Positions 5,435 through 41,282 of a stretch of DNA of 64,000 nucleotides are shown here, piece by piece. Every line of letters begins with the position of its first letter. Position 1 is the first letter of the stretch. The DNA comes from Trichoplax adhaerens (lineage: Eukaryota; Animalia; Placozoa). Under the pieces are notes generated by a model. It did not search any database. It was not told the DNA's origin and worked only from the letters and a program-made list of their open reading frames with translations. A program made the translations under genes and the position numbers. The DNA is taken from positions 2,159,429 to 2,223,428 of the forward strand of contig NW_002060953.1 in assembly GCF_000150275.1 (NCBI RefSeq), in the 5' to 3' direction.

Positions 5435-8400
5435 CTAAGCTGCAGTTCCTTGTCCTAAATCGCTTGTTGATATAGTTAGCATGGCCTTTGAATGATCACT
5501 ACCGCCATTAGCTTCCTCTACTCCTGGGGAAATATTGGACGTGTTTCGGACAGAAAGTTCATCATTTCCCACCAGTAAGTCTTCGTCACTTGTCTCAAAG
5601 TTTGAGTCCTAAACCAGATAAAATTGTCAAAAATTTGCCGGATTTTAATCGCGGACACAAGAATGATGCAAAATTTTTCATCTAAAATAAGGACTACTGT
5701 ACTGACAATACGTTATCTGTCACGTTACCCTATCTAAGGTCTCATATTTCGTCTTAAAACAAGTACCAAGCCGTTGAAATCGCGTACCCTCAAAAGGATT
5801 TATTGAGCTATGAACAAATATTGGCAACATATATTTACGAAGAAGTTAAGGATCATGAAAACAATCGATTAATGGCAATAAATTCATAATTAATTTAAAA
5901 TCCTAAATTGGTAATGAAATATCTTTTTTGAAAGGATATCCTTTGTCAAAATTGATCCAAACACTAGCCAATGCAGATCGATCACCAACGCTTGATGAGG
6001 TTGCTGCATATGGATTATTTGGCATAGGCTCGGGCAACGATTTCTGAAACAAATTTGAAATTCAATATAGATCAACGTTAAAATTTGTATTACTACAACA
6101 ATATTATACAGTAGAATCAGCTCAATGATTGGATACTGATGCACATACTTGGCTTTCTTCTTCTTCTTCTTCTTCTTCTTCTTGGCCAACTCTGTTATAA
6201 TTTCAGTAATATTAAAGTTATGATATTGTCACCTTAGCAAATGCCATGACGTCGCTATTGATTTAATCTTACCGGATTTTAAGTAATAGCAACATTTGCG
6301 TAGTTGCGCCACCATTGATTAAGACAGTTATGAATACAATCATTAATGTTGTAGTAAACATTAGTTGACGGCTTTCACTGGATGTATTACGAATAGCCAA
6401 AGCAAATGCAATCGCACCACGCAACCCTATCGGTCCCAGTAAGCAAAATTTAATGAGTGTTTGACAGGTCTAGACCCTATAATGTATAAATACAATGCAC
6501 GCAGCATTACCTGCAAAGAACATCATATGCTGTAGATTGTAGCCAATCTTACTTCGGCGGGCTCTATTCAGGATAAAACTAAGCGGATAAACATTACATA
6601 GACGACCGACAAACATTGCCAGCTAGATTTTCCGTAAAGGACAATACACCTCAATCATTGACTGCAACATTGCCAATCTTAAGATAAACAAGGTAGTTGT
6701 GTATAAAAAGTAAATAACACTATCTGAGGAGGATACAAATGCAAAGGCGATAAAACCCATGTACCAACGATGATAAGGAAAGACGAAAAACGAAAGTCCC
6801 ATGTAGGAAAATATGAAGTTTTCGGCTAAAAAGTTGAAGACTTCAAATAACTATCAAAATCAACAAGATTATAAATCAGATTTAAAATTAGGATGATTTC
6901 AATTTTCGATTGCTCGGCAAAAGATTGACAAAGTCGGAGTACATAAAGTTCAACCTGTTTGGTTCTTTTCTTGGATTCATCCGATAAGTTTTTATAAGTG
7001 TAATGTGATTGAGTAATTCCACAAAACAAAATCGCGACAATACCTGAAATGATTGATCAATGCAAATATCAATGGTTATGCATGTACTCAAATAGAATAC
7101 AAAATCGTCCTTTTCACTGTAGTTATCAATTTTCAACCTACCAGTCAACCCTAATGCTTCAGCAACAAGGAAAGTGGAGTATGACATAATGGCAAAAATG
7201 GCAGTTTCCAGTAATGGATATTCCTTAATACTTGTTAGTTTGGTAATGTGCACATTTATTAAGGTCAACAATAAAACATGAATACAGATGACAACTGGCC
7301 AAATTCGTAAACACTACTGTTAAACCATTGTAAACATCAATGAAGGATATCAAAGCCGTGAGTAGTCCCATTAAACAACCAATACCGAAAGAGCCAACAA
7401 ATATGCCAATAAAGATGCCAATCGATCGAAACAATGCTCCAGCATCAAAGACACCTTCGCCCTCGGCAGAGTACGGCGAATAAGTTAAGATGGAGCTATA
7501 GAGGTAGCAAAAATGAATTGACAGTGGTTAGATTATCTGACAAATGGTGGATGAATGTTTGCATATTGTAGACAACCAGAGCTTAACTAAGCACTTTATT
7601 CAAGCTACAAACCTATACAGAACAATGGCTACAGCATCATTTAAGACACTTTCACCAAAAACGAGAGCATACAGTTTGGAATCGACGTGTAGATCGTGAA
7701 AGATGGCCAAGACAGTGACTGCAAGTATACCAAAAATGGTATTTGTTTAATAAGCAATGCATGATGAGAGAGTTAATACTATGCGAAGCAGCGATTCAAT
7801 TTCTAATGCAACCAGACTCATTCTATAACAGTGCTATACCGGGATCAGTAGCGGAAATCATCGCTCCAAAGAGTAGACAATCGACAAAGTTGAAGCCATT
7901 TACACTTCGAATTCTTGACACAAATGCATACATAATACCACTATATAATTAGTAGAAAAAAGAAGTGTTATACGGTATCATTATGCCGATCGATTTTACA
8001 AGTAGTGAGTTGCATCAATACACTCTTACAGTTCCATAAATCAAAGCCTATCTATACTGTAATATATCAATCACCGATCATCATCAAGATTAAATTTTAT
8101 CATCTACTGCAGTGCTAAAGATATGTTGTTTGCAATAGAATGAATGTGACTGTAATACTAAAGACTTGGCATTCACACTTGATTCGGCAGCATTATTTAT
8201 TTCAGGATGTACAGCAAAAATAGTCGATAACTTACCCAATGACAAAGCACGAGATGGTTGTACCAATCATAGCAAATAAGAGAATTGATCCAAAGTTGCG
8301 AAAGAAATGCCTCTACGAGTATCAAAGTCAAAGCAATAATACCCAATTGTTTAATAATTTAAGAAGGATTAGTGGTTTTACAGCTCTCTTTTATGTAAAC

Positions 8401-9954
8401 TGATGGCAAAGCAATAAACTTGCTGAATAAGTTATACAATCTCAAATTAATCCCATTTTTTAACAATATCGTTTTTAACACGCTATCGAGTATGAAATCA
8501 CAGAGGTGATTGATGTCGAAGCTGAGTGTCAATTTGACCCTAACCGATATCGTAAACTTACACGTCTCAAATCATAGCCGGCATAGAATATAATTGGAGG
8601 GAGTAAGACATAAAAAAATACTTCAGGATCAAATACCACCTGCCCCATTCCAAAGCAAGATTACCAAAATTGTTTATAAGAGTAAGATAAGAAAAAAAAA
8701 ATGGATCGATTAGATAATGGTAAGAATTTTCTTTCTTTTCAGATAACAAAATTCTATACTCTATGGTAGAGGTGAAATTTCGAAATGGACTGAGAACGGT
8801 TGAAACATTGATTGATGTTTTATCCTTCTTTTACTCTAATCCACTAGCTAATGAAGTTGTCCATGTCAACCATCATTGCATGGAAAAAGATAAACTACCC
8901 AATATGGCCTACATCATCAGATAATCATGGTTGAACTTACCCTATCGACTAGTTGTGATTGGGGGACGCGTGGCGTTTCGTTGTTATAAGTTGCAGATAA
9001 CTTGTAGGCATAAGTAACATTGTCGCGAACGACATAAAGCTCTGAAGGGATTGTTCTATTGGTGGTATTAACAGGGCAAGTATAGGTCAGTCCAGTCTGA
9101 TTGGGATGGCTTGTATACCGGATTAGCGCTCCCATGATTAAACCTATTGGCATGTACAAAACGTAAACAACAACGGATTAGTTTAGACTGCAAGTAAGAA
9201 CGATGATGGAGAAGTAAACGGCTAGACTGATGTGAGTTATATCTTTGTTGCAAGGAGTCATGCCCTGCCGAGTTCAAACACAACATTGAATTCAACACGG
9301 TGTTAGGCAATATTAGGCTACTCCATCCATTTCCGAATGGATGGAGAGCTACAGGGTGCCCCATCCTTTCGCTATGGAAATGACTACAAGTATACAATGT
9401 AGAGAGACAACAGTGAGCATACGGAATGGACAAGTTATGTAAAGCATTTCAGTCAACATAAACTGAAACTATGATGTCATCAGAATGACAAATTTCGAAC
9501 ATCTGATTGAAGATGAAGACTGAAAATGGATATCCAAAAGGGATGGCTGTGCAAGAGATGAATCCAGCCGTAGCCGAGAATGTTTTGAAGAAACAAACAC
9601 GCCAATTGGATCATCCTCCAATGCATTGTAGCTTGCATACCGTCGTGCACAATCAAGACTATGTCGACGCCATCCACCATAAAGACAGTGCATGGAAAAA
9701 GGCTTACCGTAAATCATGGCTAATCCTGTTTCATGGATAAATCGAATTCGTTTGACTTTAAATCTCCAAATGGTTAAAACGGTAATTAACAGGAGAAAGA
9801 GTAGCGCCATCAACATGACACTGTCCATTCGATGTTGACCTTCTACACGCAGCTCGGTACTGCCTTCATAATTGGTCGATTGTTGGATAGAATAAGGCAA
9901 AGCAGTGAGTAGGATGAGTAAACTAAGGATAGACTGGCCATTAATGAGCGACAT
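5435..9954 (-). CDS. Endosomal-type Na+/H+ exchanger, SLC9A6/7/9-like, paralog A (16 exons, intact)
   Basis: Exons 9954-9708, 9143-8941, 8639-8562, 8312-8236, 7940-7840, 7718-7613, 7495-7351, 7247-7142, 7043-6955, 6850-6737, 6622-6511, 6426-6273, 6191-6149, 6043-5940, 5834-5729, 5608-5435. Motifs [65 protein letters not shown]; signal-peptide-like N-terminus. Confidence 0.93.
5835..5939 (-). other. U12-type intron 14 of NHE-A (AT-AA)
   Basis: 5' ATATCCTTT; branch ATCCTTAAC; 10 nt later ...CGTAA|A TAT ATG TTG CCA. The conserved frame requires an AA end. Confidence 0.82.
6155..6181 (-). repeat. (GAA)9 coding microsatellite giving a poly-Glu run in NHE-A exon 13
   Basis: Spliced frame reads [14 protein letters not shown] then donor gtatgt. 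Confidence 0.85.
6623..6736 (-). other. U12-type intron 10 of NHE-A (GT-AG)
   Basis: 5' GTATCCTC; branch-like GTCCTTTAC close to the AG; no polypyrimidine tract. Confidence 0.8.
7248..7350 (-). other. U12-type intron 7 of NHE-A (AT-AC)
   Basis: 5' ATATCCTTC; branch GACCTTAAT; ends ...GTGCAC before ATT ACC AAA CTA (ITKLT). Confidence 0.9.
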
Positions 9955-10109
9955 GGTGGGACCTGAACGACTGGATGTTGCACTACACAACTGCAATCTT
10001 GAAATAAAGATCGGAATAAATTGATTGGAATGGCCGCGGGATTCCTTTTCTACTTGAGATCAAGTCCTAGATCGGATCGGAGATGAATGCGTCCTCAAGC
10101 CCGGTACCC

Positions 10110-10650
10110 CAGTACAGTACCGAATCGAACCCAATATGGAACTCTATATGGACGAGTCAAAGTCTAGCTTGAACAGAGTAAATGCCAATCTACGTTACCC
10201 TACTCTACTGTACCTCAAGGACAAGAGTCATGATTGAGTAGCACTACTGGCAGTCTTCAACGGAGTCAGAATGGGCGGAAAGGACAGAGTGGACACAGTA
10301 CTTTGTACTGTACTGAGCCAGGCACCACGATACTGTACTGTACATACTGTACCGTACAGTACTGTACTACAGTTAGACTCGAGAAAGGTTCGGTTCAATA
10401 CATTTATGGTCTACTGTATGTCTACAGTATGTGCGTACAGTACAGAGTACTGTAGCATCGGTACTCAAGACACCCTGTTGTACTGTACTGTGAGAACTGG
10501 TACGCCCACAGTTCATGGTGACTATATTAATGCACAATATACTAGGTATAGCCAGCTTTCGATCATAATTTTTGTCACTACCGGTAAAAACGACAGTGCA
10601 GAGTACTGTAGCGTCGTGATACTCACGACACCCTGTTGTACTGTACTGTG
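10110..10650. promoter_or_regulatory. Cluster of TACAGTA/TACTGTA motifs upstream of NHE-A (candidate promoter element)
   Basis: Many copies in both orientations (e.g. cagtacagtac, tactgtactgtacatactgtaccgtacagtactgtactacagt) about 150-700 bp 5' of the ATG; function is inferred. Confidence 0.5.
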
Positions 10651-10757
10651 AGAACTGGTACGCCCGCAGTTCATGGTGACTATATTAATGCACAGTATAC
10701 TAGGTGTAGCCCGCTTTCGATCATAATTTTTGTCACTACCGGTAAAAACAACAGTGC
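10443..10757. repeat. Near-identical ~157-bp tandem duplication (2 copies)
   Basis: cagagtactgtagc...ccggtaaaaacRacagtg at ~10443-10598 and ~10599-10757. Confidence 0.9.
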
Positions 10758-13229
10758 TTTCATAAACTACTCAATCCGACAGAACGGTCAAAGGCGATAA
10801 CTAAAAAATTCCAGCAGCTAGAATTCAAGCAGAATAAAAACTTCGTCATCGCATGAACTACCAAAGAGAGAATGGACTATTCAATATATCACTGGGATTT
10901 CCTGTATTGAGTAGTCGATGAATGTATAATCTGGGATTTCTAGAGATTTTCCACTTAAAAGTCTGTGGTACAAGTAGCGATTACTTCATGTTGCTACCAC
11001 CCTGACAGTACAGTACTTAGTAAAATGTTCCAATACCGATACTGTAGAGTAACTCGATCGGGCTACTCGAAGAGCTCGAGCATTCTCCATTCTAGGCTTG
11101 CCAGTCTTCCCTGCTCTAAAACAACTGAGATATTACTTGCTGTTATCAAAGGTAGCATAGTATAATTGTAGTCAAGTCCATTCTTAAGGGTCCACAATCA
11201 ATCTGTCCAACTGGACTTAAAACCCGAATTAAGCTTTCTTACAATGAAAACCAACCGTAACTGTATTTACAACAAATTATGAACAAGAAGAACGGGCGGA
11301 TCGACTCGTTGGATACGCTTATAAATCGTAGCGCATGACCTATTTAGTAATGGTAGTAACATTATCACGCTTCCACGCGCTTAGCACGGCCATTGAATTG
11401 CTATATTTTGCCTAAGGCACGAGCAACTAATCCCATTAAACTACGCTAGTATTATAGCCTACGGTAGTGAATATTAGTCATTCTATACTTAATTCAGAAT
11501 TCAACTCTAGTACTAAAACTCACGGCAGTGCAATAATATTAGGATTGATACGACTACAATTGTACCAAGTTCAACCTTGCTATCGACCGTTCTCGCCTCG
11601 TTTAGGGTCGACTGCATACAAATTGGCTTTAAAATAATGCTAAGCTGATCCAACTTTTCTTCCTACCAAGCAAACCATGGGCAGAAACGAAATTCGTCGA
11701 ATGAATTATAGTATACATCCCCTTGCTGGATGGCAAGAACTAATATAGTTAGAGGCTGTCTTACTGATTCATCATTGTGAATCAACAACGCTCTGTACCA
11801 AGGCTGATCCAATCCCCTCCCCATACTAAACAACGAATATGCACAACATAGCGTTATACCTGTTGCAGAGCTAAAATGAATAAACCACTTTCAGTGCAAT
11901 CAAAGTACAACCAAAAAAATCAACTGTACCCATGCTCGTCAAGCGCGCAATGCACATCGTATAGCCAAAAATGAATAAACTACTGGGCAAATTCACTTGC
12001 TGGATGTTTTGATGTCTCTTTTGCTTGGCTGTAATCAATTAATCGATCTCAAGAATTCTCTGTACTGTACATACACAAAGTATTCCAAAATATTATCCAT
12101 GTTGGTGATATTGCATAGCCTGATAGCCTATATCAATGCGCAAACTACTATACCCTACAACTGTACAATGGCACTTGCTAATGCATGATCAAATTACTTG
12201 ATACCTCTTTGTATTGCCGTAATGAACTAATCTATTTCAGGAATTCTCTATAATATATTAAGGCATAGCCATAAAAGCCCCCTTCCATCTGCGCTGTCCA
12301 ATGTCCAGCGCACAGCCTAAATGCTATCAATACCCTGTCCAGCTCATAATACAGTACATCTTGCACAGCCAAAATAAATGAGCTACTCAATTGCATAATT
12401 GGATTGCATTTTGAAGCAGTAAGCCAACTACACGCCCACCGACTCATATCAAATTGATCATCAAGAAAGGATATTGTCGACCGTAGTTTACATTTCGTTC
12501 CTTTTTCATTTGCGGTAGATCTGTAATGTTAACAACATTAACTACTCTATTCAATAGCTATTCGTGCTAGTACTGTATAGGAGATCCTACAGTACGCGCA
12601 TATTTTTTATCCTGATAGTTATAATAATGTTATCGACTAAAAGTAAAAGAATAATCTAATCATTTATCATCTATGCCTCATGGAAAGTAGAAGGTAAAAT
12701 GTGGTACATACGAGTACGTACCAGTAGAAGGCGCCACTGTACTCATTAGGAAGTGATTTTTGACTTGATAGGTAGTTAAAGATGCATTCATCAGTCGCCT
12801 ATAATACTGCCAAGTTTTTCTATAATGGTTAGCTCTTATCCTTGATTAACATAGGACTCCCGATGAATTATAATAAAAGGCTATTACTATCCGCTGACGT
12901 TTCATTGGATTTAAATTTTATTGCAAGGTCATCGAGGATTTTTAGGGAAACCTATAGTATGCGATCGATAGTGATTCTACTGACAAGATGCTAAAACTAG
13001 ACGAGAATTTTTACTAGCTATCAACTATATTATAATATATAACTACACCGTATACATTGGTAATGGCAACCTTATTAAGACCTTAGATAAAGTGTATCGT
13101 AATTTGCATTTTTTTAATTTAAAAAATAGTATGCTAGTACTATATTTTCATAATAGCCTAGCATCGATGCCTTGATAGAGCTACTGCATCGTTACGCGTG
13201 GAAACTTTTCAACCCTTATTGAAAGCAAA

Positions 13230-16200
13230 TCATAGCGATGACTCCTGAGTGCCATTCCTTCGTTCTGCATCATGGATCGATATTTCGCTATTTTGAATCA
13301 ATGAGTCATGATCAATTGTCTAAATAAGAAGCAGACGAAAACATTAGTTCAATTTCATCAAGTCATTGGCGATATGTTACCAACGACGAAGCATTTGATC
13401 TCCATAGCAAGAATAGATCAAAGCAATTGAAAAAGTCATGGCAACAGAAAAACGTTGCAATGCTATTTTACCCTCTCTGCGGTCCCATATCGCCTGCTAA
13501 AAATACCACCAAACCATTGAAGCCGTGTACCCTCAACGGGAATAGTTGAGCTACGACAAAATAGGGGCAACATATACTTGTCTAGGGGTTAAGGTAAAGC
13601 AGACGCAATTGGTTGATAATAACCAACAATATCCTAGACACATTAATCGAAAGTGCAAGATAGGCAAATATAAGAATTGATAAACTATCAGCATTGGATA
13701 TTTTTTGTCGAATTGGACCCACGCATTTGCCAAAGCTGATAGATCAGGATTGGGTGAGGAAGCATTTGGATTATTGGGCGTTGATTTCACCGAAGTTTCC
13801 TTTAATGAATCTCATCGTTTAATCATCGTAGGAAATTTGCATCTCTATTCATTATCATCAAGGCATTAAGAATGGGAGTATTACCTGATTTTCTTCCATT
13901 TCATTTTCGCCAGTTCTATCATTAAAACATCAGCATAGTTTAGGTTAAATTCGATATACGTAACGGTACTTCAATTCACTTTCTTCTTCTATCCAATGAA
14001 TCTTACCGAATTTTAAGTAGCGATAGCATTTGCCCGGTGCCCCCACCATTGAAAATGACTGTGGCAAAGACAATCATTAATGTAGTGGTAAACATTAGCT
14101 GACGGCTTTCGCTCGATGTATTACGAATAGCCAAGGCAAATGCAATAGCGCCGCGTAATCCTATCGTCCAAAATGTAAAAGTAGTTAGTTATACAGGAAT
14201 TTTAAGTTTGTCCTAATACAACGATTAGTGCAACTAACAATTAAGATAAAGTTACCTGCAAATAACATCATATGCTGCAGATTGCAGCTGATTTTATTTT
14301 GTCGGACTCTGTTTAAAATAAAACTTAAAGGATAAATATTACAAAGGCGACCAGCAAAGATTGCAAGCTTGATATTTTGTTAAGGATCGCACAAGGTATT
14401 CTCTAATTTTAAAATGAGGCATTAGAGATTAAATATCAAATGGATAGCCTATAAGCATGGCATACACTATATCTCAAGGATACGAATGCAAAACTAATAA
14501 AACCAATATTCCAACGATGATAGGGAAAAACGAAAACTGAAAGTCCCATATAAGAGAATATGAACTTTTCGGCAATAAAGTTCAAAAGTTCAAAAAACTA
14601 CAAGAATCCAAAGAGATGATAAAAGAAAGCCAAAATTAGCATGACTAAATTCACTCACGAGCCAATCTTAAGAGAGAAAAAATATCAGGCAGAAGGTTCT
14701 ACCTGCTTGGTTCTTTTCTGCGATTCAAGAGATAGATTCTTATGTGTATAATGAGATTGGATAATTCCACAAAATAGGATCGCAACAATGCCTGAAAATG
14801 AATACGATGTTATAAAATCATAACATAATGATACATGGACGCAAAATATCAAGTTCTTCTTCTTGCTGCTATCAAGAATAGTAGATCTACCCGTCAGTTT
14901 CATTGCTTCTGCAACTAAAAAAGTAGAGTATGACATCATGGCGAAAATGGTGGTTTCAAGTAATGGATATTTCCCAATACGAGTTAGTTTGGTAAAGTGC
15001 ATCTTCGTTAAGGTCAATTACCGTATAAAGCCAACAAAATCGTGAATAACAAAAATTTTTAGCAATGAAAACACGAATATTGCTGTATCATTTATAGAGA
15101 AAGGATATCAAAGCCATTAATAATCCCATGATGCATCCAACAGCAAATGAACCCAAAAATATACCAAGAAAAACCCCAACCGACCGAAAAAAACCTGCAG
15201 CATTAAAAGTATCTACTCCTTCGGCAGAGTACGGTGAATAGGCCAAGATGGAACTACAGTATAAAAGTCATTTAAAAGTGGTCATATTCTAAAGGATGAT
15301 TCTTGACCAAATAGATGGTGAATAGTGAAGTCTAAGCACAGTGGTTACTTTCAACGCCAAGTCAATTCAGCATTTTAAATTAGGTAATACTCCCAAGCTT
15401 CGAGATACTAACCGATACAGAACGATAGCCACTGCATCATTTAAGACACTTTCGCCAAAAACCAGAACATATAGCTTAGAATCAACATGTAAATCGTGAA
15501 AAACTGCCAAGACGGTTACTGCAAAGACAAGATGCAATATTATTGTAGTTGTTTAATGTTGGAAATGGCATAGAAGGGATACAGTAAATTATAGCGACTT
15601 GAATTTAAAGTAATAAAGCAATTCGTATAACAGTGTAATGAGTGCACTCGTATATACCAGGATCAGTAGCAGAAATCATCGCACCAAAGAGTAGGCAATC
15701 GATGAAATCGAAGCCATTTATAACTTGAATTTTGGAAACGAAAGCATACATTATGCCACTGTGATATGAATCAAAAATCAAAATTAAATGGTACATCAAT
15801 AGCAACATAATCTCTACTGGCAATATACGTCATCAACCATAAGATGCCTTAACCTTTCATACTTTGAGTAAATTAATAGGTAGCAATATATGACATAAAC
15901 CGGATGATAGCTTAAGTAATAATCGTTTCTAACATTTTAATGTGCTAAATTTGCTCATAAGATATACTAGGATAGCAATCATGGGATGAGCTATCGTCAC
16001 GATAGAATCAAGATACAACACCAGCGACACAAATGTCTGCTGAAATTTTAAAATTCGAGCTCAAAATTTAAAGTAGCAGTTATTAATACTATATTGACTA
16101 CTGGATTGAATTGTTAGATACTTTCTAAAAGAGTGAATAAGGATCGTAGTAAAGGTACTTACTAGTAGTCAAAAGGCTTTTAGTATTTCTATCTATAATG

Positions 16201-18228
16201 AATGGCTAACTTACCCAATTACAAAGCAAGAAATGGTGGTGCCAATCACAGCAAACATCAGGATGGAACCAAAGTTGCTAAAAAAGTGTTTCTAAACCCG
16301 TAAAATCAACATCAATTTTATTTACAAATTTTAATTGTTGTATATCCATTTCTAAACTATCCTTTAGTTCATTGAAGTAAAACAAACAAAGCAGAAAAAA
16401 TGCACTATATCTTGATACTAGTTAATGCAGTAATACTTCAATTACAAATTTAGATTCTAAAAAATGTATTTCTAGAACACATAAAATTAACGTCAAGTAA
16501 ATTTATCAGTTTCAAGTGTTTGATATTCATTTTCAGTTATTCTTCATTTTATGCAGGTACAGAGTAGACCATTGGCAGGACCATGATTAGGATTTTGTAT
16601 TTAATTTATTTACGTTCTATTAACACATATCAGTATCTAGGATCTTAGCACTTAACTAGCGTAATAATACTTTAATTACAAATGCTAAATCATGAAGCTT
16701 CAATAACGATTTTGAAAGGATTCATTACACACAGTTAAAATAGTAGGTCCACTTACTTGTCTCAAATCATAACCAGCATAAAATATGATTGGAGGAAGGA
16801 GCACATAAAAAAATACTTCCGGATCGAAACCCACCTTCATCAATGAAAGAAAGATTAATGTTATCGTATATCTACATCGATACTGAAGCATGGCTGAGTA
16901 TTCTTATTCTAATACTGTTGCCCTTGATTCATCGACAGTAAAATATTAGGATTAGGTATAACTAATATATTATTTTTTAATACTGATCGATACAGAATAA
17001 GACATGATTCAGAAATTGAAGCATGACTGACAGTAAGTGCTTCACTACTTTTGGCCTTGATTCATTCCACTGAATCAATCAAGTTCTGCAAATTCACTTC
17101 AGTTCATTAAGTAATACAAATGAAATGATCATCAAGGCCAAACTTCGAGGTAAAACAATATTATACAGTTCAACTCTTTCGTCTACAGATATCTTTCGAA
17201 CTTACCCTATCAACGAGTTCTGATATCGGTAATTCGGGTGTTTCATTGCGGTAAGTTGCAGACAATTTGTAAGCATAGGTAATATTATTGTCTTGTACAT
17301 AAAATGTCGATGGGGTTGTTCTGTTTGTAATGTTGATTGGGAAAGTGTAGGCAATTGCAGTTTCACTTGGCATACTGGTATACCTGATTAATACTCCCAT
17401 CACTCCTCCTATCGTTATGCAAGTCAAAACAGAAACAGGACGCAGTCATATTGATACACATCAAGATGAAATGCTAAGAATATGCCGTATTTACTTCTAT
17501 AGTCTCACTCCTTAAAGTTGGAAGACTAGAGATTATTAACTAAGTAAGTCTTTTAAGTTTAGATCGTAGCTTTAGGCCTAAATTTCTTGACTTTCTGGTA
17601 GAAAGCTCCCAATGATGAAAGCTTCGCACATTAAGTACAGTACTTGTAAGAATAGACGTCTATATTTGAATTCGTTCATACTAACTCAATCCAAAATCTC
17701 GATAATCAAAGCAAGACAATAAAGAAAAACATTCTTGAATATAAAGTTTAGGAGTAAAGATTCTAACACCTTAAGATTACCATAGTTTATCAGTTTTATA
17801 AGCGATCGAAACGATGTTATGAAGAGACTTTTAAATCAAAATTTGGGGGGGGGGAGGAAATGAATTAGTGTCGTCATAATTACAAGTAACAAGTAAATAA
17901 ACTCCCTACTCCTTTTCTCACAAATGAATCTATACGCTATAAACTGCATGCTACAACTATACCCTGCAGTACATCAGTACTTACCGTAAAACATGGATAA
18001 CCCAGTTTCATGCAGAAATCGAACTTGTTTTACTTTTAATCGCCAAGCGGTTAAAGTAGTAAGCAAGGATAGAAAGAGTAAAACCATCAAAAGAATGCTA
18101 TATAGCTGATGTTGGTCTTCAACACGCTGCTCGATCGTGCCTTCATAATTTGTTGGTTTTTGAATTGAATAGGGTAATGCATTTAGCAGCACAACCAAAA
18201 TGACGGCGAAATGATAAAGATTTAACAT
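13230..18228 (-). CDS. Endosomal-type Na+/H+ exchanger, SLC9A6/7/9-like, paralog B (16 exons, apparently intact)
   Basis: Same exon structure as [58 protein letters not shown]; last exon 13319-13230 ends ...QESSL*. Confidence 0.9.
13578..13701 (-). other. U12-type intron 14 of NHE-B (AT-AA, weak 5' site)
   Basis: 5' ATATCCAA; branch TACCTTAAC; ...AGACAA|G TAT ATG TTG CCC. Confidence 0.75.
14368..14483 (-). other. U12-type intron 10 of NHE-B (GT-AG)
   Basis: 5' GTATCCTTG; branch ATCCTTAAC about 11 nt before the AAG| acceptor. Confidence 0.9.
14997..15108 (-). other. U12-type intron 7 of NHE-B (AT-AC)
   Basis: 5' ATATCCTTT; branch GACCTTAAC; ...GATGCAC|TTT ACC AAA CTA. Confidence 0.9.
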
Positions 18229-18723
18229 GATAGAAAAGAACGAAATGATGTCATTTATGATGAAAAGAAGTTTTTAAATATATTTCGAGAGGAAGAAAGC
18301 CTCTAGAATAGTCTGCTATAAAGTCTACACTCGTCCCTATACGCAGAATAATTTGATAATTACACCTGTACCAGGTAAGCTATATCATAAGTACATATAC
18401 ACGCTCTTTGGGCCAAAGAAATTGGCGGTAGGATGGAACAATCATGTGACTTAATCATTAAATAATAGAAAGCAAATGAAATAATGAGAAAGAATAGAAT
18501 GATATCATTTGTTACGAAAAGGAGACTTGCAGTGGATTCGGGAAGAAAGCCATCAGAATTCCCTGCTGGGTACTCTCTATATGTAGAATAATACGATAAT
18601 CGCAACTCTACCAGGTTAATAATGCGATAGCAGTATGCTTAGTTAAGGCAAATTGATTAGTAGAAGAAAGGAATAATTTTTTGATTCATTCAATAAAGAA
18701 TAGCATTGACGTAAACTTGATGG

Positions 18724-18809
18724 AATCCCATGGATTAACCTGTTCTTTACTTCATCTATTAGGAAGGTAGAGTAGATGGAGTAATATAAAGTTTATTCCC
18801 ATGGGGATT
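18724..18809. repeat. Imperfect fold-back inverted repeat (~38-bp arms, ~10-nt loop), MITE-like
   Basis: Left arm aatcccatggattaacctgttctttacttcatctatt versus reverse complement of right arm aatccccatgggaataaactttatattactccatctact. Confidence 0.6.
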
Positions 18810-21950: not shown

Positions 21951-22123
21951 ATTCAGTCGAAAGAGGAGAAATCATTGGCTAAAATTTCTCATTACGTAGA
22001 CTGATTCCTAGGTGCCAATTAGCATAATATCCTACTTTTGAGTATAAAAAACCACGATCAAATTTCATATTGAATTATTATTCGATACAATTAATGTATT
22101 ACCTGATAACTCATCTATAAATT

Positions 22124-25100
22124 ATGGAGGAATTCCGGAATTGCCAAGATTGGGCGAGCATTTTGGTGGTCTTGATGACGATATTACCTATCACACAAGC
22201 TAAAGTAGATCATGAAGGGATGACCGAAATTCGTGTTGAAAATCTCCATCGCATGTACAGTGTGACCTTACTGATTTTACTCTTTCTACTCTTGGTAACA
22301 GTGATCACTGCTTGGCAATTTAAAGCAAGGCGTATGCGATTTTTACATGAAACTGGACTAGCTATGATCTATGGTAAGTCTAATGGAAGGAATGAGGAAT
22401 AACTTGACTCTCATTTCATCCGTAAATTACCATTTCCTACTAGTTGTACCCAATTACTTTAAATCCTTGTACTTGCTAGCGAGGTAAACAATTAAATCTT
22501 CCCTAATACTTAGCATAGCCGTGGATTACTAGGCAGAGTATTTAGTAGTCCTTAGCACAACTTACTGTATAAACCTCGTTCATAAATAGTAGCAGTTGTG
22601 TTTAGCTCGAAATCCTAACGGTAAAACTGAACAAAGCCCAGTATGTACAAACAATAATTACATAATTAATTCTCATCGTAAAACTAGATATCGCTATTGT
22701 TCTGCTGATTCAATGATAATGTGATCATTAAAAAACAATATTATCTGCATTTGCAGGAGTAATCATGGGAGCAATTATTAAATACTCTACACAACCTGAT
22801 CAGCAGGATTATCCCATACAGTGCTCTTTGAATAAGACTAACGGTAGTCTTCCGTTGCTGCTGTCTGCAAGCCTTGAAAATGTCAGCTACTCCTATCAAT
22901 TGCTGGCTATACATGACCGAGAAAGCCCTGCTACAGCAGAATCCCCATTAGTTGAAACGGTAAGGAAGATTGCAATATCAGCAATAATGGAATAGCAATC
23001 ATTCAAACCATGATACAGTCAGCTCAGTAACTCTACTTCTATTCTATGTAAGATAGGATTTATGACAAGTAATTTCAGCAAGTAATTTTATCCGAATTAG
23101 TTAATGTTCGATCTAGAAATACTTCTTAATATTTTATTTCTCGAGCTTTCTATATGAGATGTGATTTATGAGAAGTAGTATACAGCAGTTTAAGGCCGTT
23201 ATTTTAATTGAAATAGTGTAATCTCCGACCTAGCGATCTTCTTCAATGTTTTACTTTCTCTACCATTATTCAATACCAAATATGACTTACTAAAAGTGAA
23301 ATACAGTAATTATAACATGCTCTTTCTGTCCAAATAGATGATTTTTGATCCAGAAATATTTTTCTATGTTTTGCTTCCTCCGGTTATCTTTTACGCTGGA
23401 TACAATTTACGACATGTAAGTATTTAAACTCTACATTTTATGGATATTATGATAATACTAGGTCTTTTAGCTACAGTGAATAATGAGAGCTATCATTTCT
23501 GCTATAGAAGCAAAAAATAGCAGCCTTAACCAGAGTTCTGTAGCAAAATTTTTTACTGCCCTTTATTATTATTAGAGGCATTTCTTTAGTAACTTTGCGT
23601 CAATCCTTTTATACGCAATGCTTGGAACCATTATTTCCTGTTTTACGATTGGGTAAGTTTTACTCTGTGCCTAAGTATAGAATTATGTGACTTGCCTAAA
23701 TGCCTACCACCTTAAACTTACTATAAACTGGCTCAGAAGTAGATTTTTCGGTTTGTTGTTGAATTTAAGAATCAGAAAAAAACATATTTACTGCAATAAT
23801 ATCCCAGCACATAACTTCAGAATTTCGTTGTATTAGTGAAAGTTTATATGAACGATACATAAATCTATCTATCGAAAGTTTTGATATTCTAACATTAGTT
23901 TCCATTACTTTATGTGGCAAGTGCTATCATGTACCTATTTGTTTCAAACATTCAACCTATCGGCGACTTTGGTTTCATCGACTGTCTGATATTTGGAGCT
24001 ATGATTTCTGCTACGGATCCTGGTATAGCACTAGCCTAGTGGATTTTAAAATTACAGGATTGAAATATAGTAAGTACCGTAATATCTAATCGTGATGTGC
24101 TTTAATTTTAGTAACTGTTTTGGCAATATTTCACGATTTACACGTTGATTCAAAACTCTACGCTCTGGTTTTTGGCGAAAGTGTCCTAAATGATGCCGTG
24201 GCTATTGTACTGTATAGGTATGTACAATAGCTTCTAGGAAAATAGTAAACAAGAACTTCTTTGATTAATTAAGTACTGAAATGCCAGACCATAAGTAGCA
24301 CTATAAGGCGAAATAAAGTTGTAAATTCCATTTTAGCTCGATCTTGATTTATTCACCGTACTCGCTGCATAGTGAAAGTGGATTTCATGTTGGTGCCTTG
24401 TTTCGATCTATTGCTGGCTTTCTCGGCATATTCGCTGGCTCTTTTTCCTTGGGCTGCTTACTCGGATTAACGACAGCATTAATATCTTATTGATAGTAAT
24501 ATAAGACATAAAATACCTCTGCTAGACTATATAAGTGATACAGTACTGTACGATGTACGATATTATCAATCACAAAGAAACTAACAAACCCTGCTCTTAT
24601 TTCCTGATGAAAAATCGTTGATGCAATTTTTACCATTTAATCAGTACCGTTTGTCACATTTTTGTTAAAAGTTTTATTTAACTCTGTATTAGAATTGTTG
24701 CAATATCGCAGCAAGATATTGCATAGCTGTAACAAACGTTCATTCATAACGTATTTTACAAAATTATTTTATTATACATGTGAATAGTCTGGGATTGTAG
24801 TGATTAGATAAATATATTTCGTGAATCGCTCACGATAATGTTCTTTGTTTGATCCTTAATAACTCTGTAAATCTCTAAGTTGACAAGAATCCGAGAATTT
24901 CCATTATTAGAGACTGCGGTATTTATTATCTTCTCCTATTCGGCATTTCTCATCGCTGAAGCTCTCCGTTTAACGGGTATTGTATCCTATGCCGGCAGCA
25001 TCTCCTTATATATTTATGTATATATATTCTATACATTATAGATATTTTAAATCGAACCTTTTTACAATGTTCTCTATACTTTCTGCTTCTTTAGGTATTG

Positions 25101-26447
25101 TAACTATATTGTTTTGTGGAATAACTCAATCCCACTTTACTTATAAAAATTTATCCGATGAATCCCAGAAAAGAACAAAACAGGTTTATATTTGTTATTT
25201 TTACCTAAGAAGTGACCGTATCTATACTACCGATGAAACTAAATTTCAAAACATTGACGAAAACCACTTCTAGGCCTTTGAAATTATTAATTTCCTCGCA
25301 GAAAATTTCATATTCTCTTATATGGGCCTTTCATTTTTTGTTTTCCCATACCATCGTTGGTATTTTGGATTTATAGCTTTTTCATTTGTATCTTTATGAA
25401 GAATTTGATAATGCTTTTAAAACTAGTGTAAAAATATCTGTATTTATCGGAACTATTCAAGCCCTCAACGTATTACCTAGATAGCCATTTTTGTAGGTCG
25501 GTTATGCAATATATATCCTCTCAGTTTCATCTTAAATCGGACTCGTCGAAATAAGATCAGCTACAATATACAGCATATGATGGTTTTTGCAGGTATAATG
25601 GCATTTGGATCGTCTCCTGTTATAGCTATGATATCAATATGAAACATAATAAAATGTGACGAATTAATTATATTTGTGGTAGGTCTACGCGGTGCTATAG
25701 CATTCGCTTTGGCTATTCGTAATACCTCTAGCGAAAGCCGGCAATTAATGTTTACTACAACATTAATGATTGTATTTGTTACGGTTTTGTTTAATGGAGG
25801 TACAACAACTCTAATGCTGCGGTGGTTGAGAATAGAGTAAGTTTTGTAAATTGCAGTCTAGAAGATTCATTTATATCAATTACACTCTTCATTATTAACT
25901 CCTATTAGTCTTGCTGGATCTGAAGATGAAAGGGATCAGGTATCAATAATGAATAAATCTAGAAAAGAATTTCAAGAATACTGTACTGAAATTATTACGC
26001 TAAACAGTATCTCTCGTAAGTTAAGCATAATGTAAATTGATCATTATAGGCTGAAACTGCGCCAGAAACTGCGCCAGAAACTGAGAATCCCAATGCTTCA
26101 GTATCATCCAAAGATGGAAATCGCTCATTATTGGCTAGATCATTTATAAATTTCGATAAAAAATATCCTAATTTTATTTCCTTGATATCGTGTTACGTAG
26201 CAATTGTTTATTAAAGCTCCATGGGAGAGATGATATTCGAATTTTGCATTAAACTACTAACGCTCTTGCCAATCTTTTGATAAACTGAGTTGAATTCCTT
26301 AATCCATAGCTCAAGTATCTGTCTCCAATATTTGTTCATAGCTCTAAAAATCCTTTTGAAGGTACTCGATTTCAACGTTGGGGTAACTGTTTTAAGACAA
26401 TGGATGAAGAAGATCGGGATAATTTGGTGGAAATGGCTAGTGCATAA
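22124..26447 (+). CDS. Endosomal-type Na+/H+ exchanger, SLC9A6/7/9-like, paralog C (15 exons, short tail)
   Basis: Exons 22124-22373, 22757-22959, 23338-23415, 23576-23652, 23922-24022, 24112-24217, 24337-24481, 24871-24976, 25095-25183, 25274-25387, 25481-25592, 25683-25836, 25909-25939, 26050-26162, 26315-26447. SATDP and GESVLNDA are intact. Confidence 0.9.
23101..23295 (+). pseudogene. Two decayed tandem copies of NHE exon 3 inside intron 2 of paralog C
   Basis: 23101ff reads [14 protein letters not shown]...* and 23217-23295 reads [26 protein letters not shown]|gt, versus the functional exon [26 protein letters not shown]|gt. Confidence 0.7.
24482..24870 (+). other. U12-type intron 7 of NHE-C (AT-AA)
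   Basis: 5' ATATCTTA; branch ATCCTTAAT; ...CTCTGTAA|ATC TCT AAG TTG ACA (ISKLT). Confidence 0.78.
25388..25480 (+). other. U12-type intron 10 of NHE-C (GT-AG, degenerate signals)
   Basis: 5' GTATCTTT; branch-like GCCCTCAAC 11 nt before the intron end. Confidence 0.7.
26163..26314 (+). other. U12-type intron 14 of NHE-C (AT-AA)
   Basis: 5' ATATCCTAA; branch TTCCTTAAT; ...GCTCAA|G TAT CTG TCT CCA. Confidence 0.8.
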
Positions 26448-27117
26448 TCATATTTAGCCCCAATTATAATCTTACTATCTACAACTGAGTTTTTAAGGCA
26501 TTAAATTAAATTCATAAGCAGAATATATATTGTGCATCTTTTCAATGAAGTTGCTAAAAATTAAAAAGCTAAAATTTACAGGTAATGGAATTTTTGTGGC
26601 CAGGAGAAATAGCCAATAGCTGATATTACTGCAATAATTTAGTTGTAATTAAACATATTTATACATCTTAGATAGTAACTACTTTAACTTAATAATCGTA
26701 GTCGTATTAATTAAAGTTTGCAAAGTAAAGCTCCATAGATTCATTTATATTTTATTAAAATTGGATTTCATAATTTTTTATCTGAAATCCGTACCAGTAC
26801 CATTTTGAATGTAACTTCTTGCGGATGTATAATCATCAATGCTTTAAGTGATGCAGTAAAATTACTATTAGAAAGAGCTCATTTACACTGTTGACTCAGT
26901 GCTTTACCTTTACCTATCGATAAAATAATACTTTAGATAAGCTTGGAGTCTATGCAGTATGCATGCTTTAATGGCAATCCTATTGTAATTATCAATTCTA
27001 TATCACAGTATCAAGGCTCGACCATTCAGGATCGAAATTACATCAATGATGTGCTGTTGTTATATTCCATAGGATATTTGTAGCAAGTTTTCTGTACCAA
27101 GCCCGATAGATGAACAA

Positions 27118-27692
27118 TTTAACTTGCTCATATAACTAACGTCCTAGCAGTTGCAAGTTTCGATTCAACATAGTAGCAAAGTGTTTTGAAGGTATAATAA
27201 TGAAAGACGAACAAAATGGCCAGTAAAAACATTTCGTATTTGGCTAATATTCATATTCTATAAGGCATATGTGGGACGCTGTCCGCAGTGAATTCGATTG
27301 ATTGTAATACTAACCTACTCATGTGACTAAAGTGCAATCTGAACGGAGCATGATATAACTATGTAGTGATTTATCTAATTATATTGGTAGAATATTTTGA
27401 AAGTATAGCAACAAAAAATTAATTAAAGGATGAAAAAAATGACCGGAACTTGGCTAATAAATTAATTAAGATAGTTGTAATAATCATATCATAATCATCA
27501 ATTCTATAAAATAACTCTGTACAGTGTTCGATGGATTAAAATATTAATTTGCTCATGTAACTAACGTAAAAACTATTCTGAGTATGGCGTAACAGTGCAG
27601 TGATTAGAGCTAATTAGAGTAGTAAAGTACCTGAAAGTATAATAATGAAATATTAATTAAACGGCCACCAAAAGGCTCCTATTTGGCTAATA
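27118..27692. repeat. Diverged direct repeat (~140 bp) at ~27118 and ~27544 between NHE-C and NHE-D
   Basis: Both copies share ttgctcatRtaactaacgt ... tgaaRgtataataatgaaa ... ggcca ... tatttggctaatat. Confidence 0.65.
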
Positions 27693-28322
27693 TATTGTGT
27701 ATATTACAACGTATAACTTTCAATGATGTCGTATGGCACTCATGTTGCATTAGTTTGGAAGGCAATAGTACTGCTGATGACAATTGATTATACAGTAATT
27801 AGATTGTCTCAGAATAACTAAAATGATTCAAGCTTAAATAACGTAAATTTTAGAATACTTATACTGTAGAAAGCCCAATACCCCACCTTCTACAGTATTT
27901 CATAATACTAATGGCATGAAAGCTCATCTAATCCGCAACGCTGTGTGAATCATAAGATGTTCTGGACATAAGATATTTTAATGCAAGATCGTAGAGATAA
28001 TAGTTGTACTTGCACTACTAAATAATTGTTTGAATATTCGTAAAATCTCCTTATTCACCATATGTTAATGAGTAAATCAAGAATAAAGCACTTGCCTTGC
28101 ATATAGTACTGTATTGGCAGCTGAAACTGCTTTAATATGTAAATATTCTAATTATATGGCAGTAGATGATACACACGCCATTATGCAGGGCGTATGGTCA
28201 TCATCAGTCTTAAGCCCCTGGAATATCGGTGTATTGAGTCTATTTCACGGCCTGTACTCATCAGCTATCTCAGTAAACTAAACTTCAACTCCTCCAATTT
28301 AGGTGCAGAAATTGAGTACATC

Positions 28323-31300
28323 ATGACGCTATTTTCTTTTCGTCGTGCTTGGTGGATAGTATTCTTATTTATCTTGACCACGATACCTCCTTCCTTGCAG
28401 CATAATCGCGAAAGCATTACCGAAGAGGAAGTAGAACATCACCATCATCTATTTCGAAATGTGCTCATCATTATGTTCGTTCTTCTCCTACTCAATATCT
28501 TGACAGCTTGGGTGCTGAGAATCTATCATATTGTTATCGTGCATGAGACGGGACTGGCGATGATATATGGTAAGGAATCTACAATACTTGCAAGAATATG
28601 TTTTTCTCTATTAGAACGCCATGTAATCCTATTATTATCACGTGGAGATTTCTACCATGTTTTAATAATAAATATGCAATAAACAGACACTTCTTATTAC
28701 TGTAATTCCAAGTTTGATTTCTGAAGTTATCTTTACATAGATTGATCTTGATGATTGCAGCTATTATATTATACTTGATTTAAAATCTGTCGATTCAATC
28801 TCAAAACAGATTAAAACATAGCTGGTCGGTACACGATGTCCTTCGAGCTAAACATTTGTATTTAAATGCCCTACGTAATTGTAAGCCTAAAAGCTTTACT
28901 AAAATATAATTCCACAGGCCTGATAACTGGAGCAGTTGTTAAGTATTCTTTGCCACCTGAGGAGCAAGAAATCTCGAAGGCTTGTATGTTTACTGTGAAG
29001 AACGATAACATTCCGGCCATTCTTCATGCAACAATTGATAATAAAACGTGTGCCTATGGATTATTAAATGTTTACGATACCGATAACCCTGATTTACCCC
29101 AACCACAACTGGTCGATATGGTAAGTTAAACACTACTACAAAATAAGGCACGTTTAATCTACGCCATGGACGAGAAAATGTTTATTCTTCCATGTATTTG
29201 TACTGATGCATGATAGCTTAGTTTGTAACTTGAAATCGGATAAATACTAATAACGATAGTATTTCTGAAATCGAATTAGCTCATCTTCAATTCGGAAATC
29301 TTTTTCTATATTATGCTTCCTCCAATCATATTCTTTGCTGGATACGATTTACGACGCGTAAGTAATACTACATTGACTGCAGATTTATAATATTTATAAT
29401 AATTACGGCATTAATCAATGTTGAAACTTGTTGTTAAAATTTAACTCATACATTAGTTATAATCTTTAATGCTCAACAGAACTATAGAGCAGAGTTGCTT
29501 CGGCATAACCTATTTAATGGTAACCTTCAAAATATATCAACTGCCGATATCTGATTTATAACCTAATGCTACATCTGCAAATAGAGGCATTTCTTTCGCA
29601 ATTTTGGATCAATTCTTTTCTATGCCATTGTTGGAACCATTATTTCCTGTTTTGTCATCAGGTAAGTTAAACATCCAAAGTGTACCTTAGTCTTCTTTTA
29701 AAGCCATTAATGAACTACAGTTTGTAGCTAATACATTTAAACTCTTTGCTTCATTTTTTTCGAAAAGACGACGTTGAAACTAACGGAGTTCTATCTGTTT
29801 ATGATCTTCCGTTGTATAAAAATATGGAGATATTACTGATAAAATTTTCGCAGCTTTAAGATTGTACCGTAAGAATCGAATTAGTTCTATATTTGAATTT
29901 ACAGCTGGCAAATTAATTGATGAGGCATATTATCCATGACTAGAATGAACCATGTAGATTTCATATACGTACTCTAAGTATGTGACCATTGTATCAGCGC
30001 TTACTTAGTATATCGAATTCCACACGTTATCATACAAGCAATATTATTTATGATATTTAAATGGTTTCTATCTATGTCCTAAATGAATCTTCGTAGTTTT
30101 TTTTTAAAGTAAATAAATGACAAACAAATTTTGCTAGCAATTTGAGCTAAGATTACTAGTGCTGATTTGTTTTTTGAATATTTACAAGGTTTATAAGCTA
30201 GAATTGATCTATTGGATATTGTTGCTTGTTTACCATTTAGTGGCATAATGTATGGATATGTTACAAAAATTTATCCTATTCCTGGTTTTAAATTTGTCGA
30301 CTGCCTATTATTTGGTGCTATGATTTCAGCAACAGATCCTGGTATGATCTAAATCTTTTAATTTCTATTACCTAGAATACCAGTTCTGAAGTAGCTAATA
30401 CTTCTTCTAATTGAAAAATTTTTCATTATTAGTCACTGTCTTGGCTATTTTTCAACATTTACATGTCGATTCCAAATTGTATGCCTTGGTCTTTGGAGAA
30501 AGTGTTCTCAATGATGCAGTCTCTATCGTTTTATATAGGTAATTAAGTTCCAAATCTATTAATATGGCTTAGGGGAAATTTGATCTTTATAATTGTAAAT
30601 TGATCGATTAATAACCTAAAGAGGCATATCTAGATCCTGTCAACAGCTATGAAAAGGTTCCGTTATCCTATTTTAGTGCTATTTTAACTTATTCACCTGA
30701 TATGAGCGAAAGCGAAAATGGTTTTGATGGTGCTGCATTCTTTGAATTACTGCTCAATTTCCTATGGATTTTTCTTGGTTCATTTGGTGTTGGTTGCTTA
30801 ATGGGCTTATTAACAGCATTAATATCCTACCACGATCATTTTCATGATAAATATCTTTGTGAAATTAGCTACGACTTATTCACTCTATAATATTAGCTAA
30901 TTCTTGAAATTATTCGAACAAAAATTCTTACTACTATTGCCTAATTTTGGATAGTTAAAGATTAGCATCTCACAAATAATTACAGTTGTAGTGCTATCAA
31001 TTACTCTAAAAGAATCGGTGATTAGTTATCAGTCACGATATATCATAGAAAATTACTTACTTTCTTCCGGAATTCTTAGGAATGCGTAGCAATCGTTTGT
31101 TTTCCTAACACTATGCTTACTAATAGTAGGATTAAAAGAGCTAATTTTAGATAGTCAAGTTATCTTCAGCTAGTAATTATAACTTATTCGATATAATTTA
31201 TTGAACGCTACTCTAGCAAATAATTTATGTGGATTTGTTCATTTCTCTTTCGATATAGCGATTAATTGTTAATTTGCCTTTCCTTTTGTAGTTATAGTTC

Positions 31301-33317
31301 TAGCTGAGTTGATACCATTAATTTCATTAAGCTATCTTATGAGATCTACAACAGTAGTAAATATAGTAATACTAGCGTAAAAGTAGTTTCTTAAGAGTAA
31401 ATGCTATCCTTATTACCTTCATACTGTCCTTACGGATAACGGTATGTATAGGATAGTGAGCATACTAGTACTAATATGATATGTGGTTTCGGTATTAATT
31501 TAAAGTATCATAAAGGATAACGGTTAACACAGCATTAAAATTATAAATCCAACCATTCAAATGTTAATGCTATCCGCTTTTTATTATCCACGTAATATGG
31601 TTTCAATATATGCAAACTAATGATAGAATGATAAAACTTTTGTTCTAAACATCTTCTTTCGATCTCTATTCGGCCTTAATCATTTTGTAAATTACTAAGC
31701 TAACCAATATCAAGGAACATCCGATACTGGAAACAGCCATTTTCATCATCATTTCCTATTTAACTTTTCTCATTGCTGAAGCTTTTCATTTAACAGGTAA
31801 TTTAGTTTATACAAATTGCTTTTTTGTCTATTCCAGAAGAGCTCGATTAATAACATGACTTTCTTTTCCACCAGGAATTGTAGCCATTCTATTCTGTGGT
31901 ATTATCCAATCCCATTATACCTATAAAAATTTATCTGCTGAATCTAGAACTAGAACAAAACAAGTTATTTGCCATAGTCGCAAATTTAGAATAAAACTTT
32001 CGTTAATTCGTATTATAGCCCCTTTCTTCTTATCATTTCCTTTATTTATTGTTACAGACTATTGAAATGATCAGCTTCCTAGCTGAAAATGCCGTATTCT
32101 CCTATATGGGACTTTCATGTTTCGTTTTCCCCTATCATAGATTTTATATGGGATTTGTTGTATTTTCATTTGTATCTTTAAGTGTCTTTTTAGACCTTGT
32201 AGCCTATTTAGTGATAACTAACTATTGAAGAACATAAATCTAGTTCCGATTAATCTTGTTGAAAGTTTCTACAAGCCCTTAACCTTTGAATTAGATCGCA
32301 ATTTTAACAGGTCGCCTATGCAATATATATCCAATCAGTTTCATCTTAAATAGAGCTCGTCAAAACAGGATTGGCTACAGGCTTCAGCACATGATGCTTT
32401 TTTCTGGTGAGCCGAGTATTGAATTATCTTACTATTTTAGTATTTTAAAACAGCAGCATAAGTGATAAGGGTTATTTATTTTCGATTATAGGTCTACGAG
32501 GTGCTATCGCCTTCGCTCTGGCTATTCGCAATACATCTAGCAAAGTTCGTCAACTCATGTTTACAACAACGGTGGTAATTGTATTTATTACAGTCTTATT
32601 TAATGGAGGTACAACAACAATGATGTTGCGGTGGCTAAAAATCAAGTTAGTATTAGATATTGAATGATATATAAGAATTTATTGCAAATTCATTATTCAT
32701 TTTATTAATTTCTATCGTCATTGTTAGGGTTGGAATTACCCAAGATGAAGATGATGACAGCGAGGTGCTAATAACATTATTTATTAGCTGAACTGTTCAG
32801 TTTTAATGTAGAATAATATCGCATTAATGAAGCGAGCTTCTCATGGAAATAATCATTGCTATCATTATAGATTGACTACAGGCAAAATAATGTTTATGCT
32901 GCAACATCGTCGAACGCTGCAGATCGTTCACTACTCGCAAAAATGTGGTTTAGCTTGGATGAGAAATATCCTACTCTTAGCTCTAATTTTTATTTATAGT
33001 TGTTTATAACAGCCAACTTTACAAAATACAGCAATCATTTTATTGAACCATCCACTTTATTAGATAGCCTTGTCCACGTATTTCGAGTAATTCAGAGTCA
33101 TTGCCTTAACATCTGGTGTAAGTATTTATCACCAATATTTGTTCATAGAGGTACCAATCCTTTTGAAGGAACTCGATTCCATCAGTGTGGAGTCTGTTTC
33201 AAAACTAAGTATGATGAAGATACTGACCGCAATGAAGATAATGATGAAGAAGTAATCTATAAGAATACAAATGATGAGACAAGGATTCGCTTGACCGACG
33301 CTGTGGTTAACGCATAA
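28323..33317 (+). CDS. Endosomal-type Na+/H+ exchanger, SLC9A6/7/9-like, paralog D (15 exons, appears most divergent)
   Basis: Same exon structure. [56 protein letters not shown]; last exon 33122-33317 ends ...DAVVNA*. Confidence 0.9.
30822..31690 (+). other. U12-type intron 7 of NHE-D (AT-AA)
   Basis: 5' ATATCCTAC; branch GCCTTAAT; ...TTTTGTAA|ATT ACT AAG CTA ACC (ITKLT). Confidence 0.8.
32172..32294 (+). other. U12-type intron 10 of NHE-D (GT-AG)
   Basis: 5' GTATCTTT; branch CCCTTAAC 11 nt before the intron end. Confidence 0.8.
32966..33121 (+). other. U12-type intron 14 of NHE-D (AT-AA)
   Basis: 5' ATATCCTAC; branch TGCCTTAAC; ...GGTGTAA|G TAT TTA TCA CCA. Confidence 0.82.
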
Positions 33318-41229: not shown

Positions 41230-41282
41230 CGTACAGTACATACTGTACTAAAGTACTGTAGAAAACCAGGGCTGTACTGTAG
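41230..41282. promoter_or_regulatory. TACAGTA/TACTGTA motif cluster upstream of RALBP1
   Basis: cgtacagtacatactgtactaaagtactgta...gtactgta about 450 bp 5' of the ATG. Confidence 0.4.

Follow-up and report, generated by a model that had tools for sequence, protein, structure and literature searches.

U12-type introns that begin with AT and end with AA (AT-AA) are known from human and mouse RASGRP4 and from human MSH3 (Sheth et al. 2006, PMC1557818; Larue & Roy 2023, PMC10639083; de Wolf et al. 2021, PMC8280824). Among the non-canonical minor introns in the literature AT-AA is the most frequent type, and both conservation between orthologues and switching between AT-AC and AT-AA have been documented for known cases. 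In mammals, three U12 introns in one gene are found only in SLC Na/H exchangers (Sheth et al. 2006, PMC1557818), and SLC9A6 is a recognised U12 host gene (PMC6239176). Here we describe intron 14 of four tandem NHE6/7/9-like genes of the placozoan Trichoplax adhaerens, which lie in a stretch of 64,000 nt (RefSeq assembly GCF_000150275.1, contig NW_002060953.1, positions 2,159,429 to 2,223,428, forward strand; hereafter the window, with position 1 as its first letter). A preliminary description of the window had proposed that this intron is of the AT-AA type in all four genes, and its premise that endosomal NHE genes are U12 hosts and AT-AA a rare known variant agrees with the literature. Like the known AT-AN introns, the Trichoplax intron has a U12 donor and branch box, a short distance from branch to 3' end, and a putative terminal AA that is one base away from AT-AC. 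It differs from the known AT-AA cases in that AA is kept across four tandem placozoan paralogs, and in that intron 7 of the same genes apparently switches from AC to AA between paralog pairs. The mammalian SLC9A6/7/9-type genes belong to the same family and likewise carry three minor introns per gene; their positional identity with the Trichoplax introns is deduced through Asterias, Ptychodera and Acropora, and the terminal subtypes vary by lineage.

Comparison of open reading frame (ORF) fragments all-against-all placed four NHE6/7/9-like paralogs in the window: A (5723-10059, minus strand; TRIADDRAFT_11627, partial; conserved exons 1-14), B (13466-18273, minus strand; TRIADDRAFT_11431, partial), C (22124-26447, plus strand; TRIADDRAFT_59624) and D (28170-33314, plus strand; TRIADDRAFT_29621). 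The database protein of TRIADDRAFT_59624 (P0002) is identical to exons of paralog C, single exons of the paralogs matched PF00999 (Na_H_Exchanger) in a Pfam search, and the list of named relatives was dominated by NHE6/7/9. Judging from these matches, A to D are tandem endosomal Na+/H+ exchanger paralogs of the SLC9A6/7/9 type (CPA1). Introns 1-6, 8, 9 and 11 are plain GT-AG introns with GTAAGT-like donors, common to A-D in position and phase. As all of them came out as GT-AG at matching sites, the logic of placing introns by restoration of the reading frame is validated on the same genes. A small acidic exon lies between exons 12 and 13 of our analysis scripts; with this exon counted, the intron in question is number 14, as in the preliminary description, and number 13 in the scripts.

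Intron 14 opens with ATATCC in all four paralogs, immediately past the (F/L)D(K/E) codons and two further bases (phase 2). Its branch box, CCTTAAC or CCTTAAT, stands 10 nt from the intron end in A and B and 11 nt from it in C and D, and the last two bases are AA. In paralog A (5835-5939, minus strand, 105 nt) it begins ATATCCTTTC and has the box TCCTTAAC 10 nt from an end that reads GTAA; the donor reads ATATCCTTT. The intron of B (13578-13701, minus strand, 124 nt) runs from ATATCCAATG to ACCTTAAC plus 10 nt and ends ACAA before G. Those of C (26163-26314, plus strand, 152 nt; ATATCCTAAT, box TCCTTAAT plus 11 nt) and D (32966-33121, plus strand, 156 nt; ATATCCTACT, box GCCTTAAC plus 11 nt) end TCAA and GTAA, each again followed by G. 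The distance from the branch adenosine to the last intron base is 11 nt in A and B and 12 nt in C and D. Within the window, ATATCC and CCTTAAY occur at 3.8e-4 and 2.3e-4 per nt; at these frequencies chance co-occurrence is negligible. The interiors of the introns have lost their similarity (identity of 0.33-0.50 between paralogs; shuffled sequence averages 0.49), and no paralog deviates in ATATCC, CCTTAA or the terminal AA. Coordinates, start and branch site were all recomputed in the four paralogs and agreed with the preliminary description, and its proposal that AA has been kept through the duplications is supported.

The 3' end was assessed by the reading frame. Once the start is set at ATATCC, no in-frame AC or AG acceptor lies within 12 nt on either side in any of the four paralogs, and in paralog A both dinucleotides are absent from the 18 nt 3' of the branch box. 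In B, C and D the G that follows AA creates an AG 1 nt downstream, which would break the frame. These points, read directly, bear out the earlier claim that AA alone restores the frame. The AA junction also reproduces the FD-x-x-Y/F spacing of homologues (NFDHNYLKPIL, RFDRFYLMPLL, DLDHKFFKPIF), and AA would be the sole frame-restoring terminus compatible with both the ATATCC register and the spacing of the orthologues. Over the 24 codons past the junction, the AA frame contains no stops and 36% of the codon differences are synonymous; the AG frame gives 11% synonymous differences and a stop in A, and the third frame 9% and many stops. Downstream of intron 14, a coding signature, and with it purifying selection, looks to be confined to the AA-defined frame.

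These values bear on the alternative that, in B-D, minor-spliceosome cleavage falls mostly on the AG 1 nt further on, leaving AA minor or unused. The product would be an AT-AG intron and a frameshifted mRNA that is probably unproductive or encodes an alternative tail. AT-AG is a documented U12 subtype, and, according to the literature, 3' site choice in U12 introns is error-prone and the distance from branch to 3' site is critical and is best at 11-13 nt; the AG in B-D, at 12-13 nt from the branch adenosine, falls within this range. However, the AG frame lacks the coding signature just described, conservation of the AA frame, with the spacing exact, extends from the paralogs to other phyla, and paralog A has the same architecture without any AG. 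We therefore regard predominant use of AG as unlikely, and some use of it in B-D as an unproductive side product as possible. The same distances qualify the earlier proposal that the branch point sets the 3' site: AA at 11-12 nt fits it, but the AG of B-D fits equally well. Distance alone is thus insufficient, and something besides must favour AA. Compatibility between the first and last bases probably contributes, an intron that starts with A ending more readily in C or A than in G.

A G after AA, seen in B, C and D and in a helicase intron described below, would also permit both cuts to be moved 1 nt downstream in B-D (exon..A^TATCC ... AAG^TAT, the caret marking each cut), giving a TA-AG intron and an unchanged frame and protein. 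The U12 5' cut is fixed immediately before RTATCC, and a shift of the register yields no AG for paralog A, for C/D intron 7 or for the SHMT gene discussed below; we consider this arrangement exceedingly improbable. Excision by the major spliceosome was weighed as well. Nested GT-AG pairs are present in B, C and D, and one of them was chosen by the annotation of Trichoplax sp. H2 (model P0151, equivalent to donor 26197 and acceptor 26309 in C), which gains about 13 residues. No GT-AG or GC-AG solution exists in A and none is shared among B-D; the positions vary between paralogs, and the inserted peptides are unconserved and missing from all orthologues. A nested major-spliceosome intron is accordingly highly improbable.

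The remaining alternative is that intron 14 is retained, so that transcripts terminate a few codons in and encode tail-less exchangers. A public model (P0152, Trichoplax sp. H2) does stop inside the intron, and A-type minor introns show relatively high retention in human cells (literature). Against this, the exon past intron 14 is conserved in one frame in A-D and corresponds to the YLKPILTH-type segment in the NHE6/7/9 proteins of animals, and the U12 signals have been conserved while the interiors were randomised. We judge retention to be very unlikely. Removal of intron 14 at AA is the reading followed below.

The preliminary description had suggested a comparison with the same intron position in orthologues. 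RefSeq-type proteins of Asterias rubens, Ptychodera flava and Acropora digitifera were mapped onto their own loci, and all 15 intron positions and phases proved common to these species and Trichoplax. At the position of intron 14, in phase 2 at the second codon after (F/L)D, all three outgroups have a U12-type intron with consensus motifs, which is GT-AG in Asterias (donor GTATCCTTTT, box TTCCTTAAT plus 11 nt) and in Ptychodera (donor GTATCCTTTC, box TCCTTAAC plus 10 nt), and AT-AC in Acropora (donor ATATCCTTTG, box TTCCTTAAC plus 9 nt). As U12-type introns occur at the matching codon and phase in three phyla, the Trichoplax intron is the orthologue of an ancient minor intron. The coral intron, in an NHE7-like gene (P0162/L014), resembles that of Trichoplax in codon, phase, ATATCC donor and branch box (TTCCTTAAC); it differs in its AC at 9 nt from the box and its length of 895 nt, compared with AA at 10 or 11 nt and 105-156 nt in Trichoplax. 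A single C-to-A substitution separates the two termini.

The genome from which the window comes (105.6 Mb, 1,414 contigs) was searched for small nuclear RNAs (snRNAs) of the minor spliceosome. U12 (97 bits), U6atac (105 bits), U11 (99 bits) and U4atac (59 bits) were all found above the Rfam gathering scores, and the usual element for recognition of the branch site, ATGAGTAAGGAAAATAAC, is present in the U12 gene. Minor snRNAs of Trichoplax had been reported previously (PMC2396436). The U6atac locus (C1402:438491-439592; L002-L007) holds one full-length copy, scoring 105 bits, and then five partial copies within 1.1 kb, which score 31-50 bits and lack the 5' part of the model. In its 5' splice-site pairing region the full copy reads GCCGA, compared with human AAGGA, and is the described 'CC variant' (PMC2396436). 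The AT-type donors of Trichoplax frequently depart from TTT at positions +7 to +9 (ATATCCAAT, ATATCCTAA, ATATCCTAC, ATATCTTAT); in the starfish, hemichordate and coral orthologues the nine U12-type donors are RTATCCTTT without exception. The divergence at these donor positions may be linked to the variant U6atac.

Taken together, these data support the view that intron 14 of A-D is a conserved AT-AA U12-type intron. The explanation that we favour, an ancient U12 intron spliced at AA in all four paralogs, has in our estimate a probability of about 0.85; the use of AA itself is deduced from sequence. Under this explanation, A-D would have retained an ancestral metazoan structure of 15 introns, three of them U12-type. 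Intron 14 would be excised by the minor spliceosome, U11 and U6atac recognising ATATCC and U12 pairing with CCTTAAY through the conserved element GUAAGGAA, and the second catalytic step would take place at AA, 11-12 nt past the branch adenosine. The most likely origin of AA is one C-to-A substitution in an AT-AC intron, the type found in the coral, at a time before any of the duplications; all four copies would then have kept it. Non-canonical termini are known to support U12 splicing, often at lower efficiency (literature).

Several observations weigh against this explanation. Positions +7 to +9 of the intron 14 donors diverge in B-D and are weaker there than the consensus. In the B-D genes themselves, the AG 1 nt past AA stands at an equally good branch distance and is a potential competitor. 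No transcript-derived protein spanning the intron 14 junction was found in word searches, including one with the exon-14 ORF, and Logan contigs with an A-like exon 1 end short of intron 14.

Two further introns of the four genes have U12-type features. Intron 7 is a canonical U12-type AT-AC intron in A (7248-7350, minus strand, 103 nt; phase 0, LLTAL^ITKLT; CCTTAAT plus 10 nt) and in B (14997-15108, minus strand, 112 nt; CCTTAAC plus 10 nt). It is apparently AT-AA in C (24482-24870, plus strand), with ATATCTTATT, box TCCTTAAT plus 10 nt and the junction GTAA^ATC TCT AAG, and in D (30822-31690, plus strand), with ATATCCTACC, box GCCTTAAT plus 10 nt and GTAA^ATT ACT AAG. In these two genes a second in-frame acceptor AG lies 9 nt downstream, 19 nt from the box (C 24878-24879; D 31698-31699). 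It would seem to be a real alternative acceptor, which counts against AA as the end of this intron and makes the case less clean than that of intron 14. Use of this AG would remove I-(S/T)-K (I-S-K in C), residues kept in all orthologues (VTKFT, LTKFT, VTKLT). The AA/AG pair is possibly an alternative 3' site that produces a three-residue difference in a conserved segment. A C/D-like NHE gene with the same intron positions and 65-69% DNA identity was found on a metagenome-assembly contig of 1845 nt (L016; ENA ERZ27263980, contig k141_10012), evidently from a divergent placozoan-like organism. Its intron 7 terminates in AA 10 nt from the box and lacks the AG 9 nt on; the contig includes the intron 14 donor and stops 4 nt past a branch-like box.

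Intron 10 ends in AG in all four paralogs, 11 nt from the box. In A (6623-6736, minus strand; phase 0; GTATCCTCCT, box TCCTTTAC) and B (14368-14483, minus strand; GTATCCTTGA, box TCCTTAAC) it is a U12-type GT-AG intron with a GTATCCT.. donor and TCCTT(A/T)AC 11 nt upstream of AG, and the orthologous introns of Asterias, Acropora and Ptychodera are U12-type GT-AG as well. The U12 signals are weakened in C (25388-25480, plus strand; GTATCTTTAT, box CCCTCAAC). In D (32211-32294, plus strand) the donor is U2-like and not U12-like (GTGATAACTA), and CCCTTAAC persists 11 nt before AG. The series from A and B through C to D is possibly a U12-to-U2 conversion in progress.

Other features of the window were recorded alongside. 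Intron 8 of paralog B (14792-14890, minus strand) is a GT-AG intron of 99 nt that is stop-free and a multiple of three, and its retention would keep the frame. A fifth, distant NHE-like gene at about 47242-48684 (plus strand) matches PF00999 on two exons. Near the intron-10 region it has a plain GT-AG intron (GGTAAGAAAA, about 48313), 9 codons downstream of the A-D position; by this type and offset it would belong to another NHE subfamily without the U12 intron 10. The segments 41250-42460 and 10240-10800 are internally repeated and have long open frames on both strands, and the former is GC-rich for the window (45%). A U12-like motif pair at 61064/60883 (minus strand) was dismissed, as no coding context was evident.

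The genome was also scanned with strict motifs (ATATCCTT, then 30-240 nt, then TCCTTAAC), with the reversed pattern as control. Counts were about the same as in the control, and the scan thus yields a handful of cases rather than a census. ORF support at 10 nt past the box left four cases, one of which was intron 14 of NHE paralog A, ending in AA. A second, also with AA, is a putative AT-AA U12 intron in a DEAD-box helicase gene (L020:1501-1599; C1412:782208-782306), followed by G and placed directly after GRTGR (motif VI). The exon before it matches Helicase_C (47 bits), and the adjacent AG would lead to a stop after 12 codons. The other two, in a DUF4456 gene (L021) and a weak TCP-1-like gene (L031), end in AC. 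A Pfam search of the short exons flanking the helicase, DUF4456 and TCP-1-like introns gave zero matches; the host genes were named from neighbouring exons. One scan candidate (L040) was dismissed as non-coding. A multi-exon SHMT gene (L055) has an intron at C1413:9134950 to about 9135050, with donor G^ATATCCTTAAGG and box TTCCTTGAC, in which both in-frame acceptors sit in an A-run and end in AA. SHMT is also present as an intronless copy at 9230834-9232030, about 100 kb away.

Counting the NHE genes, three unrelated genes of Trichoplax supply at least four independent AA ends (NHE intron 14, C/D intron 7, the DEAD-box helicase and SHMT), and three AC ends were seen among the AT-type U12 introns examined (A/B intron 7, DUF4456, TCP-1-like); this small sample carries some bias from the way in which the cases came to light and serves as a lead only. 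It is conceivable, though we hold it to be doubtful, that placozoan A-type minor introns regularly end in AA, reflecting a lineage-wide relaxation of 3'-terminal choice. Such a relaxation may be tied to the variant U6atac, and it would be hidden because annotations cannot model introns that end in AA.

The expectation that standard annotation would truncate or mis-model these genes was confirmed: all six public Trichoplax models, from two annotations, skip, truncate or mis-splice at AT-type introns. TRIADDRAFT_59624 (paralog C) omits exons 7, 10 and 13, each directly upstream of a U12-type intron, and resumes at the AG at 26308-26309, within intron 14. TRIADDRAFT_11431, 29621 and 11627 stop at exon 12 and mishandle intron 7. 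In Trichoplax sp. H2, the orthologue of C (P0151) was forced into the nested GT-AG intron with 13 inserted residues, and that of A (P0152) reads through into intron 14 before its stop.

Both the AT-AA subtype and NHE genes as hosts of several U12 introns were already known; the Trichoplax intron is a further case, with value for annotation and modest evolutionary interest. The gene structures of four Trichoplax genes are corrected. If AA ends are common in placozoans, censuses of minor introns that rely on annotation would undercount them in such genomes. For the endosomal NHE family, the presence of three U12 introns per gene is extended back to the placozoan-cnidarian-bilaterian ancestor, and the genes offer a natural series for the evolution of minor introns: one orthologous site shows AT-AC, AT-AA and GT-AG, and another shows decay of the U12 signals among paralogs.

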